From assembly GCF_001194135.2 (NCBI RefSeq), contig NC_068994.1, positions 6,179,911 through 6,224,691 of the forward strand: a DNA stretch of 44,781 bases. The letters run 5' to 3'. Positions 21,801-30,800 of this stretch are shown here, piece after piece. The translations under genes were made by a program, and so were the position numbers. The notes beneath the pieces were generated by a model that did no database searches, had not been told where the DNA came from, and saw only the letters and a list, made by a program, of their open reading frames with translations. The stretch's first letter is position 1. Every line of letters starts with the position of its first letter. The DNA comes from Octopus bimaculoides (Eukaryota).

Positions 21801-24800
21801 TTTGAAACTAATAATTTATTGAAATAATTTTGTCATGGTGCTGGTGGCACGCAGCAAGCACAATGCATGCGTGGGTTGTTGCCAGTGCTGTCTGACTGGC
21901 TCCCCTTGCCGGTGGCACGTAAAAAACCATCTGAACATGGTCGATCCCCCGCCTCGAATGGCTCCTGTGCCAGTAGCACGTACAAAGCACCATCTGAACG
22001 TGGCCGATTCCAGTCCCGCCTGACTGGCTCCTGTGCTGGTGGCATGTAAAAAGCACCCACTACACTCTTTGAGTGGTTGGTGTTAGGAAGCGCATCCAGC
22101 TGTAGAAACTCTGCCAGATCAGACTGGAGCCTGGTGCAGTCTCCTGGCTTCCCAGACCCCAGTCAAACCGTCCAACCCATGCCAGCATGGAAAACGGATG
22201 TTAAACGATAAGCTGGTGTTTGGAACATAAATTAGCATGAGATTCTGATGGAAGGTTTTAAGATAATTTTAAAATGGTAGAAATGTTAGCATGCCAGGCG
22301 AAATGCTTAGCGCTTTTTCTTCTGTCTTTACGTTCTGGGTTCAAATTCCACTGAGGTCGACTTTGCCTTTCATCCTTTCGGGGTTGATAAATTAAATACC
22401 AGTTCCATGCTGGTGTCAATCTAATTGACTGGCCCCCTTCCCCAAAATTTCGGGCCTTGTGCCTAGAGTAGAAAAGAATATTTTTACTTTTATTTTTGTA
22501 TTCTAAATGTGGACATCAGTATTGCTTGAAATAGATCCAAAAGACTCTTTTTTTCAGTCTTTCTATTGTGATCCACTGAAATGATAATATTAGTCTTTTC
22601 ATGCATTTTAAGAAGCAAAAAAAAAAAAAAAAAAAAAAAAAAAAAATGTCTTCATCTTGATTTTTACAGGAAGGGAAATGCCAAGGAAACACTAGTTTAA
22701 ATACTTCTTCAACAAGTAGTACCACCACACCAACTAAAACTGCCGTAAATGGTGGTCTTTCCAACTGTCGGACGGAAACGGAAGTGACACGCCAAAACAC
22801 TTCGATTGACAGTTTGGAGGATTCGAGCCAGGACATGGTTGACTTGGACTGTTCAACAGCCTCGAATCTGGCCAACAGTAGTGGTGCTTGCTCTCTACCA
22901 AATGGTGCTGGCGCCATAAAAGAGACCAACAAACTTTCTGACCAGTGCAATTCAATATCTGGAGCTAGTGATGACTCAAATGCTGTTGAGAATGAAACTT
23001 CAGAATCTGAGGCTAAAGACAGTCAGGTGAGTTAATTTTCATAAGTTTTGTGAGTTTTTGCTGAGGACTTCTCTGTTGTGGAGCATCTTTCGCTTATAAA
23101 TCTGGATTCTACTTGAAGTCAATGTATTCCTGTCTTCATGGCGTGGGTGCTGGCATGGCTGTGTAGTTAAAGAAGCTTACTGTGTAAACCTGTGGTTCCT
23201 GATTCAAACCCACTGCACAGTACCTTGACCAAATGTCTTCTATCATGGCTTCTGGTTGACCAATACTTTGAGAGTGGAATTTTGTCTGTGGGAACCATGC
23301 AATGGTTCATACAAACCTACTCAAAGTACAGGTGAATGCATATGCTTTATGAGAGATGTAGACCACAATCACTTGAATTACATAAAGAGGATTCAAAGTT
23401 GGAGGCGTCGGAGTCTTTTGTTTTGACTCCACAGCCCTGGTTCAAAGGCAGCCAATCCTTTTTGACCCTTTAGCATTCATATTATTCTGTTAGATGTAAT
23501 AATAGAGAATTTAATGATGTGATTGTTTATTTTTAGAATGACATAGTAGGGTAGGTGTAAGAGGTCTGATTAGGTCAATTTGAACATAAAACGTAGTAGA
23601 AAGTTTGGGCTGGATATGGCCTTGCAACTGGTTAATGGAATGAGCAACCGTATTGTCATAATTGGGGTCAAAGTCGATCAGTTGAGAGACATTTAGGACA
23701 AGGAAGCAGCATTATTTCTTGTAGCAGAAAAAGAAGAAAAAAAACGTAAGATTTTGATAAGATGTGAATGTATGTTGAGATGTTTTCTTTGAACTGAATG
23801 GTGATGGTTATTTCGGTGAATCAAGGGGGTGGGCAATTAGATTGTTTTTGCTATTATATCTAATACACACTTTCTTTCAGAGCACTCCTGATTTGAATTG
23901 TTCCCTAAACAGTTCACGAAAACGCATACGATCTCCTCAACATAATGATTCAACCTCCAAAACTACAGGAGAAGATGAAGATGTAAATTCAATTATCACT
24001 TGTTTCTCTTTTTGTTCTGCTTACTTGATTTTTTTTTTTTTTTTTTNNNNNNNNNNNNNNNNNNNNNNNNNNNNNNNNNNNNNNNNNNNNNNNNNNNNNN
24101 NNNNNNNNNNNNNNNNNNNNNNNNNNNNNNNNNNNNNNNNNNNNNNNNNNNNNNNNNNNNNNNNNNNNNNNNNNNNNNNNNNNNNNNNNNNNNNNNNNNN
24201 NNNNNNNNNNNNNNNNNNNNNNNNNNNNNNNNNNNNNNNNNNNNNNNNNNNNNNNNNNNNNNNNNNNNNNNNNNNNNNNNNNNNNNNNNNNNNNNNNNNN
24301 NNNNNNNNNNNNNNNNNNNNNNNNNNNNNNNNNNNNNNNNNNNNNNNNNNNNNNNNNNNNNNNNNNNNNNNNNNNNNNNNNNNNNNNNNNNNNNNNNNNN
24401 NNNNNNNNNNNNNNNNNNNNNNNNNNNNNNNNNNNNNNNNNNNNNNNNNNNNNNNNNNNNNNNNNNNNNNNNNNNNNNNNNNNNNNNNNNNNNNNNNNNN
24501 NNNNNNNNNNNNNNNNNNNNNNNNNNNNNNNNNNNNNNGAGGAACAGAGGCTATTGTAGTAGTGGTTTTTTCTTTCTTTCTTTCTTCTTCCCCCCACTTC
24601 CCATGGAATTTTTAATTCATTTTGAAATGGTTGAAGTAGCTGAATTTTATGAATTCCAATTTCAAAAAATGTAAAGTTTATAATATTGATTACAAATACC
24701 ATTGAAATGAAAAGGAAATAATGAAATTTCAAATTTGGAAACCTGCTTTGGAATTTTTTTTTTTTTTTTTTTTTCCATTAGTCTTAGACTGTAGCCATAT

Positions 24801-27800: not shown

Positions 27801-30800
27801 AGAGGTGGGGTGCTGCTGTTTTAGTTAAGAATAATTAAAAAGAAAGCAAGATTTTTAGGAAATTCTATTGAACAAGGTGGCAGTATTGTTTACTTCAAAA
27901 AACCCCTCAAAAATCCTAAACGTTTCATTGTTACATGTGATGTGTTCCTTCTTTCCAGAGTGTCCCTGATTCAAATTGTTCACCGAACAGTTCACGAAAA
28001 CGCTCAAGATCACCTCTTCATAATGATTTGACCCCCAAAAAGATAAAAGAAAGTGAAGTAAGTAATGTTTTATTTGATATATTTTATATCTCTCAGCAGT
28101 CTTCGAGAACTTTGTATTGAAGGCACAAACTTGGAAGAAATATCTAAAGGGCAATAGAATAAGTACTGGGCTTACAAAGAATAAGTCCTGGGGTCGATTT
28201 GNNNNNNNNNNNNNNNNNNNNNNNNNNNNNNNNNNNNNNNNNNNNNNNNNNNNNNNNNNNNNNNNNNNNNNNNNNNNNNNNNNNNNNNNNNNNNNNNNNN
28301 NTATATATATATATATAATAATAATATTAGGGATAAAAATCCAAAATTACACGTAAAATCTCAATTAAAATCAATTTATCAAAAATTAAAATAAGTTTCA
28401 TAGTATTAAATATATATAAATATAGTTTTAAGCCAAAGAGCCAAGGTTCATGAACTCCTTGATATGTGACTTACATCGATGAGTTCATGAACCTTGGCTC
28501 TTTGACCTAAAACTATATATACATACATACATACTGAGGGAGAGAGGGAGAGTTAAAATGTTGGATAGAAAGGTTGATGAATAAGTAGAAATAAAGCCCT
28601 GAATTGAGCTTTGGGTCGCTTTACATGTAATATCTGTTGTTTCTTGCAGAGTGCTCCTGATACGAATTCATCGCCCAACAATCCAAAGAAGCGTTCACTG
28701 TCACCATTACTTAATGATTCACCTCCAAAACAGATGAAAGAAAAAGAAGTAATGTTTCTTTTCATCATCATCATCATCATCATCATTCTTGCCTTTGTCT
28801 GTTAAGTTTCTTGCTGAAGATTAGCACAGTTTTAATTGCATACTAATTTTATAATCCATGGATTAATATGCATAGCTTCTAAATATTTTATGCTAGATGG
28901 GAGATTCTGTTTGTTGTTAGATTTGTTATGTTTAATTAGATATATAGGACATCCTGTTTGTTGTGAAAGCTATAAGTTACATTTTAATTATTTCAATGAG
29001 AATATGATTGTTATAACTAATTACATTTAATTATATATATATATATATATATATATATATATGCTAGCATGGAAAGCGGACGCTAAACGATGATGGTGAT
29101 GATATAGACACACATACATATATATACATTCATACATATGAATGAGAACCTGTTGTTATTCGTTATCAAATTGTTATTGTCATCATTTAATGACCCCTTT
29201 CCATGTTGGCATGGACTGGGGGACAAAAAATAGTTATATATTAATTATATAATATATGAGGTTTTGTTTGTTGCTACAGTTTTTAGTTAGTTAAATTTAA
29301 CCGTTGTAATACCAACCTGTCCAAAATGACTCTTGGTTCTATGGTATAAGCTTCTTGTTTTAAAGTGATCCTAATTAAAACATCCAATTAAATCTTTAAT
29401 TAATTTGTTTCAAATATCAGCTTACTAAATTATTCATTACTTACAATATACATTGCGAGCCAAAAAGTGTATTTCAACAGAAGTAACAGAAAGGTTCTGC
29501 ATTAAGCAAACAATTGACAATTTTTTTGGCCATGACACTGCATGGACCCTAAGTAGTGCATATGTAAAATTTGAATTAAATCGGTTGGGTGCTTCTCGAG
29601 TTTTAGGGATTCACACAGACACACACACATTCTCAGTTTCATATATATATATATATATAACAGAAAGGTGTTGTATATGTATCTATGAGATTCTGTTGTA
29701 TTTATTAGATAATTATAAATATATATAGTTTAATGTTATAAATGGTTGGAACGGATGTCTAAAAAGAGATCGCATAGGCCATTGATTCAAAATTTTTTCT
29801 AGCTGACCAGTTTATGTGTATTGTCTCTTGCAGAGTGCTCCTGATTTGAATTCTCCACCCAACAATCCAAAGAAGCGTTCACAGTCTCCATTACTTAACG
29901 ATTCACCTCCAAAACAGCTGAAAGAAAATGATGAAGTAAGTGGGGATTGGTTACAAATTTATTTTCTTCTACGTGAAAGCAGCCCCCTTCCCGCAAAAGA
30001 ACAAAAACAAACAAACCAAAAACTTAAAAGCTAGTTGGTTGTCTTTTGCTGTGTATATCAAACAATGTAGTAGATGAAATGCTGTGACACTCAACCAGTT
30101 CATGCCTGCATGGAAATAAGGCTGTAAACTGCTGAATTAAAAGCATATAATATTCATTCAAAATTTGATTTGATAACCATGAATCCATTGTTATAGTAAA
30201 TGGTGGCAGTTGCAGGCTTTTAATATTAGAAATAGGTTTAGACAAACTTTTTGCTTTTCAACCAGCACCTCTATTCTTTTACCAACAATATTTTACCCCC
30301 ACCACTTATGGCTCAGCAAAATTAAATATGGTACGAATATTTGCTGCTTACAGGTTGATTGCTCTTAGAAAACTGCTTGCACATAAGTCATTTTTATCAG
30401 TTTTAATATAGGGGTGTAGGCTTGGCTGTGTGGTTAAGCAGTTTGCTTCCCAACTCTGTTGTTTCAAGTCCAGTCCTACTGTGTGGCACCTTGGTCAAGT
30501 GTCTCCTCAACATTCTAACACCCACTTTTCTTTGCATGCGTGGGTCAGTCAGGATTTGTCGATGCAGATTTTATCAGAGGTCAGATGCCCTTCCAGTTGC
30601 CGACCCTCTCCTGTTTCCAAGCGAGGTAACATTACCCCATGGCCAGACCTTTTTTTATTTTTTTATTTTTTTCACAGAAGGCTGGAATCAAGGGAAGCCT
30701 CTTATATGACAGTGACACTCGTTTACAACTGCCACACTATATCAAGGCATGGAGAGAGAGACAGAGACAGATACACATGGACGATAGGCTTCTTTCAGTT

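Follow-up and report, generated by a model that had tools for sequence, protein, structure and literature searches.

How did a poly(A) polymerase (PAP) of an octopus come to carry six similar small exons in its tail, and what might they do there? The stretch of DNA analysed here, hereafter called the window, comprises 44,781 nucleotides (nt) and matches the Octopus bimaculoides assembly GCA_001194135.2, record CM046614.1, gaps included (window base 3719 equals record base 6183629). It holds a canonical PAP gene, whose 24 coding exons on the plus strand encode 858 amino acids (aa) in our exon model (coding span 6719–31139, start codon at 6719, stop codon at 31137–31139). Exons 18–23, termed R1 to R6 throughout, measure 102, 99, 99, 99, 99 and 102 nt and together contribute 200 aa. 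In our favoured reading, these exons form a tandem array that arose by repeated duplication of one ancestral phase-0/0 exon, each copy encoding a module that resembles the second nuclear localisation signal (NLS2) of vertebrate PAPs. Their variable inclusion would set the number of import sites and of cyclin-dependent kinase (CDK)-type phosphorylation sites on the tail. We put the probability of this reading at about 0.6, a joint figure for the origin of the array and for the regulatory meaning of variable inclusion.

Six paralogous exons between conserved flanks

R1 (23881–23982), R2 (25243–25341), R3 (26677–26775), R4 (27959–28057), R5 (28650–28748) and R6 (29834–29935) all lie on the plus strand. 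In the complete gene model each of them is preceded by AG and followed by GT, free of stop codons and in phase 0 at both ends, just as the original prediction, which was made from the letters of the window alone, had described them down to their positions and lengths. Its placement of the six exons between a serine/threonine (S/T)-rich exon and the terminal exon was borne out as well. The S/T-rich exon (22670–23026, plus strand, 357 nt, phase 0/0) directly precedes R1, and the terminal coding exon (31041–31139, plus strand), which encodes the conserved PAP C-terminal peptide, follows R6. Further upstream, an exon resembling the first nuclear localisation signal (NLS1) of vertebrates (21589–21667, plus strand) is conserved in all aligned PAPs; it aligns to the vertebrate KRKQLHQLLP region, with human PAP-alpha used as a lead only. 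The octopus tail thus has the metazoan layout of NLS1-like exon, S/T-rich exon, modules and conserved C-terminal peptide.

A nucleotide profile built from the six exons gave exactly six matches in the window (E values of 3e-29 to 6e-35, well beyond chance similarity), with the next match at E 0.12, and no extra or decayed module copy was found on either strand of the readable window sequence. Two subtypes can be told apart among the copies, A (R1, R2 and R4) and B (R3, R5 and R6), which in Octopus follow each other in the order A A B A B B. That is, we find neighbouring paralogous exons of one size class and of the same symmetric phase, as in a tandem exon array.

Two assembly gaps lie inside the array, one in the intron between R1 and R2 (24047–24538) and one in the intron between R4 and R5 (28202–28301), and would fit the idea that the repeats are an artefact of collapsed or duplicated haplotypes around gaps. 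No exon or reading frame crosses either gap, and both are also present in the public chromosome record CM046614.1. The orthologous O. sinensis locus is gapless and collinear over both gap positions and holds exactly six copies; the 1.3-kb and 1.6-kb intervals that match the gaps contain no modules in this species. Assembly duplication is excluded, and we give it a negligible probability, because the six copies of O. bimaculoides are only 60–93% identical to each other, because the introns between them do not align (except for a 250-bp tract common to R2 and R4, 84% identical), and because two separate gapless assemblies, those of O. sinensis (six copies) and Argonauta (five copies), hold the copies in the same order.

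Each exon encodes an NLS2-like module

The 33–34-aa product of each exon is a copy of a conserved KR-x-SP...PKKxK module, which sits between the S/T-rich region and the C-terminal peptide, where vertebrate PAPs have NLS2. Judged by its residues, the module is of NLS2 type: a basic KR cluster and an S-P site are separated by about ten residues from a second S/T-P site, after which comes a KKxK cluster. In an alignment of 32 PAPs no tail residues other than K740, R741 and K753 are invariant, and S744 is nearly so; all four belong to R4, which is also the copy at which the single module of other animals aligns. The KK of KRTSSPHKEESPKKTK we take to be residues 656/657 of human PAP-alpha. In vertebrate PAP-alpha, NLS1 and NLS2 flank the S/T region and the bipartite NLS2 includes K656/K657 (PMC10908868). 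The vertebrate tail is furthermore disordered and rich in S/T-P, its 3' exons are alternatively spliced, and through its cdc2/cyclin B sites the enzyme is inhibited at M phase (PMC6309179). The proposal that the octopus exons belong to a regulatory tail region with a second NLS therefore agrees with the position of the module, with its KR-x10-11-KKxK pattern and with its internal S/T-P sites, all of which are features of sequence.

The array contains 17 S/T-P sites, two to three per module. Four of them are full [ST]Px[KR] sites, one each in R2 (a TPKK CDK consensus site), R4, R5 and R6 (an SPPK site in each of the latter two). In its strict form, the bipartite basic pattern KR-x10-12-KKxK is confined to R2 and R4. 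In composition the array is 20% serine, 13.5% proline, 12% asparagine and 11% lysine. AlphaFold2 predicted no secondary structure, at a per-residue confidence (pLDDT) of less than 50, for almost every residue between 506 and the C-terminus, the whole array included; since the underlying alignment was shallow, we use this predicted disorder as supporting evidence only.

The module exons are coding and constrained

The introns of the array are rich in repeats of palindromic and short interspersed nuclear element (SINE)-like type, a setting in which R1–R6 could be pseudo-exons or an exonised repeat element without coding role. However, similarity between the copies stops about 20 nt beyond each exon, the R2/R4 tract being the exception, and conservation is much higher in the exons than in the introns. 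Of the 600 nt in the six exons, 9 differ between O. bimaculoides and O. sinensis, an identity of 98.5%, compared with 89% for the flanking intron (Fisher p = 4e-15). Relative to Argonauta hians, the A-type exons have changed at 29 of 43 synonymous sites, which amounts to saturation, but at only 6 of 155 non-synonymous sites. The ratio of non-synonymous to synonymous substitution rates (dN/dS) is accordingly 0.02–0.03 for A-type exons (R2 versus A1 0.02, R4 versus A3 0.03, with the Argonauta exons numbered A1 to A5) and 0.14 for R6 versus A5; among paralogue pairs it is mostly 0.1–0.4. In addition, the module is homologous to an ancestral PAP tail module, as described below. The conservation of exons over introns and the dN/dS values rule out pseudo-exons and an exonised repeat, an origin that we consider next to impossible. 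Going by these substitution patterns, R1–R6 are translated coding exons under purifying selection, and the very low dN/dS indicates that what matters is the sequence as such and not length alone.

One ancestral exon, duplicated repeatedly

In 17 PAP sequences from molluscs other than cephalopods, gastropods and a chiton among them, a protein profile of the cephalopod module matched a single site at the corresponding position of the tail (E 6e-6 to 1e-2). In other phyla the profile matches were weak (E 0.14–6.4), though the sequences share the pattern, which was seen in a nemertean, annelids, a brachiopod, a priapulid and in vertebrate PAP-gamma (KRSHSPSIDGTPKRLKD).

The number of copies differs between lineages. 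Gastropods and a chiton have one module, which in Aplysia (SKRPGSPFHNDTPPKKSKELE) is encoded by one 108-nt phase-0/0 exon. Bivalves (mytilid and ostreid) have two to three, located in Mytilus trossulus on two separate exons, one of 126 and one of 132 nt, both in phase 0/0. Two modules each were found in the hemichordate Ptychodera, where both lie within one exon, and in several teleost PAP-gamma proteins. Three modules in the order A B A are encoded by an 804-aa open reading frame in Logan mRNA contigs (from SRR25158148, SRR27666060 and related runs; 78 sequencing runs) of a non-octopod cephalopod, so classed on sequence grounds only. Argonauta hians has five (A B A B B), and both Octopus species have six (A A B A B B). 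R1 is the copy that Argonauta lacks, and no R1 remnant was found in the Argonauta locus.

The single copy of gastropods and the chiton, together with the single Aplysia exon, supports the earlier proposal that one ancestral module was amplified six-fold. As to the copy counts, the original prediction had named a similar multi-exon repeat in molluscan or other invertebrate PAPs as a finding that would speak against it, and in part such repeats do occur. Bivalves carry two to three, on separate phase-0/0 exons in Mytilus, and with the two copies of the hemichordate and of teleost PAP-gamma a comparable repeat is, in part, found in other animals too. Because copies have also multiplied in bivalves, a hemichordate, teleosts and other cephalopods, we regard the octopus array as the largest known case of a recurrent duplication and not as a unique architecture. 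This distribution shows that duplication of the NLS2 module exon took place in animals more than once and independently, and the comparison of the two octopod loci indicates that the order A-B-A-B-B is older than the split between Octopus and Argonauta.

The A-type exons are more alike within a lineage than between lineages. R2 and R4 are 93% identical at the DNA level and Argonauta A1 and A3 94%, versus 81–84% between species, and synonymous divergence (dS) is 0.28 within A-exon pairs versus 1.4–2.0 between species; the exon positions are nevertheless shared. We read this pattern as gene conversion. R2 with flanking intron (25191–25439, plus strand) is homologous to R4 with its flanks (27906–28151), 84% identical over 250 bp, a relationship also found in the tree. 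The tract at 25191–25439 is probably a gene-conversion tract, and the converted octopus sequence would then reach into the flanking introns. In the Argonauta locus (L003), the matching A-exon pair (15388–15521 and 16448–16580) is homogenised as well, some intron included. Octopus and Argonauta thus offer a clear case of exon-level concerted evolution.

Module exons are annotated as skipped in several combinations

Among the RefSeq isoforms of O. bimaculoides, X1 contains all six module exons, X2 lacks R2, X3 lacks R5, X4 lacks R1 and X5 lacks both R1 and R2. The same five patterns are annotated in O. sinensis (where the loss of R1 and R2 is X7), in addition to X5 without R3 and R4 and X6 without R4 and R5. 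In total, these records cover 7 of the 64 combinations that are possible. That any subset of the exons can be removed in frame, as had been proposed, is in keeping with phase 0/0 throughout and with the RefSeq isoforms of two Octopus species that lack one or two exons. R2 is missing from one of the UniProt models of 2015, and three modules are present in a model of O. vulgaris. The UniProt models A0A0L8FHE2 and A0A0L8FI44, also from 2015, end by readthrough of the R4 donor (28058–28130) just before the gap at 28202, which is either a gap artefact or an intronic 3' end.

Two of the three singly skipped exons, R1 and R5, have the weakest donors (GAT/GTAAAT and GAA/GTAATG, respectively, that of R5 being the weakest), and these are kept in O. 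sinensis. The Logan contigs L008 and L011, which stem from one run series (SRR27666060/SRR27666061), differ by one mismatch and by the clean absence, from one of them, of the 99 nt that make up the first A-type module; they are otherwise identical. Outside the cephalopods, cassette use of a module exon is annotated in the gastropod Gigantopelta (36 aa) and in the oysters Saccostrea and Ostrea (42 aa each).

Tandem exon duplication usually yields a set of mutually exclusive exons, of which each protein receives one, and R1–R6 have the homology, adjacency and equal size that such a set would show. Yet the RefSeq models carry four to six modules in series, and single mRNA contigs of the other cephalopod (those found in 78 sequencing runs) carry three. 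These serial modules contradict mutually exclusive splicing, which we consider highly improbable.

Regulatory dial or disordered spacer

How could variable inclusion matter to the enzyme? Each included exon would add a disordered 33-aa unit with two to three proline-directed phospho-acceptor sites. R2 and R4 would each add a complete bipartite nuclear import signal, the other four copies only a basic cluster. Since each exon would add phospho-sites and a basic cluster, exon inclusion would set the number of import and CDK-type phosphorylation sites on the tail, and might in this way act as the splicing-controlled dial on PAP regulation that the original prediction suggested. In vertebrates, it is this tail that controls nuclear localisation and M-phase inactivation of PAP (PMC10908868, PMC6309179).

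The chief alternative sees in the array a constitutive disordered spacer and in the skipping isoforms rare splicing noise or artefacts of mapping between paralogous exons; copy number would then have little regulatory meaning. It is a possible explanation, though in our view a clearly less probable one than duplicated NLS2-module exons of variable inclusion. It draws on the longest isoform, X1, which holds all six exons in both Octopus species, and on the donor sites, five of which fit the consensus about as well as those of constitutive exons, with only R5 below that range. Several further points weigh against our favoured reading, some of them by supporting a spacer. The octopus isoforms are computed RefSeq models, and the last 22 nt of R2 and R4 are identical, which invites misassigned junction reads and could create false junctions from short reads. 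The S/T tail of vertebrate PAP is dispensable for activity in vitro (PMC6309179), and no functional study of any cephalopod PAP was found. As for the modules themselves, R1 is without the second basic cluster and R3, R5 and R6 carry KQxK, so that a strict bipartite NLS fits R2 and R4 only. The B-type exons of Argonauta have lost the KR; together with the weak second cluster of the B type, this means that import cannot be the conserved role of every copy. Finally, dN/dS exceeds 1 for the pairs R3/R5 and R3/R6, on two synonymous changes each.

On the other side, four skipping patterns recur in independent calls from both Octopus species, and the clean 99-nt skip comes from de novo assembled transcripts of another cephalopod. 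The annotated cassettes of Gigantopelta, Saccostrea and Ostrea likewise speak against a purely constitutive spacer, as does the very low dN/dS, by which the sequence matters besides the length.

A more far-reaching version of the regulatory reading can be formulated, which we put forward as a speculation with rather low odds. By including up to six NLS2/CDK-site exons in different combinations, coleoid cephalopods may run a programmable valency code on their nuclear PAP. How strongly the enzyme is imported, and at which phosphorylation threshold polyadenylation is shut off, would then depend on the module count, and gene conversion would keep the modules uniform. If this were true, such a shut-off might be used at M phase, during oocyte maturation or in neurons, for example.

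Relation to known systems

The tails of vertebrate PAP-alpha and PAP-gamma share the order of NLS1-like region, S/T-rich region, KR-x-SP...KKxK module and C-terminal peptide with the octopus protein. The octopus module matches PAP-gamma sequences such as KRSHSPSIDGTPKRLKD and corresponds to the NLS2 lysines 656/657 (PMC10908868). The vertebrate PAP-gamma proteins recovered here, however, have one module, or two in several teleosts, whereas in Octopus there are six, and every one has an in-frame exon to itself. The basic clusters are also weakened in four of these octopus copies, and the import and phosphorylation roles of the octopus modules are putative. In bivalve PAPs (Mytilus, Crassostrea, Saccostrea and Ostrea) the module is tandemly duplicated as in Octopus, but with two to three copies only, from independent duplications (of KREGSP type) and without the A/B alternation. 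A likeness of mechanism alone exists with the PEVK exons of titin, which are small tandem in-frame exons by whose variable inclusion a disordered region gains or loses length and valency; in protein and function the two cases have nothing in common.

The original prediction knew of no described canonical PAP with this architecture, but in the databases it is already on record. The locus, its 858-aa product and several skipping isoforms are already annotated in RefSeq: XP_052828604-609 (O. bimaculoides) and XP_029644864-866 together with XP_036365046-049 (O. sinensis) represent the same gene, in automatic annotations named 'poly(A) polymerase beta', and a five-module Argonauta hians protein is on record at NCBI (GAB1603652.1). 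Our literature searches found no published description of the repeat array or of a cephalopod PAP. By the sequence comparisons above, a PAP tail module that was already known has undergone a lineage-specific expansion in Octopus, through the likewise known process of tandem exon duplication with cassette exons as its product. The array reveals no new kind of gene or mechanism. What it offers is a natural copy-number series (1, 2–3, 3, 5 and 6) for a short regulatory module of an enzyme that is essential to RNA processing, with a removable exon for each copy. Such a series is a convenient system in which to study how enzyme regulation depends on the count of import and phosphorylation motifs in a disordered tail.

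The PAP gene and the remaining window

PAP-like exons on the plus strand between 6.7 and 20.6 kb were located with human PAP-alpha as a lead, which served for locating only; splice junctions were fixed afterwards, and our conclusions on the gene rest on the Pfam scan, on identity to RefSeq and on retrieved sequences. The Pfam scan returned PAP_NTPase, PAP_central and PAP_RNA-bind in this order (E 5e-79, 5e-69 and 1e-24), all above the Pfam cut-offs. The 858-aa model equals XP_052828604.1 ("poly(A) polymerase beta isoform X1 [Octopus bimaculoides]") residue for residue, a protein that was also matched by the tail alone (phmmer E = 4.5e-110). D108, D110 and D162 are invariant in the 32-PAP alignment, and we take them to be the catalytic aspartate triad of the nucleotidyltransferase domain known from the bovine and yeast structures. 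At exon 8, the reading frame is kept only by a GC donor at 13324 (window 13323–13325, TG/GCATGT), and the RefSeq protein concurs.

No other gene was evident at 1–6700 and 31200–44781, no Rfam family was detected in the window, and the larger stray open reading frames had no Pfam domain. Downstream of the PAP gene the window is rich in microsatellites and contains six further assembly gaps.

Several repeats lie in the introns of the array. Between R2 and R3, a hairpin-like palindromic element of about 245 bp (25868–26111) has outer arms (25887–25942 and 26040–26095) that are 91% complementary. It is probably a common octopus repeat, and fragments of it occur in the intron between R5 and R6 (29061–29099 and 29180–29219). 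Inverted SINE-like copies at 25652–25703 and 27062–27113 bracket R3, and another such pair (25591–25637 and 28153–28201) brackets R3 and R4, the two exons missing from O. sinensis X5. About 110 bp past the second gap lies a near-perfect palindrome of 119 bp (28410–28528). In Argonauta, the intron after the S/T-rich exon contains a tandem repeat of about 85 bp (L003, 14706–15195), the copies of which are 94–96% identical.

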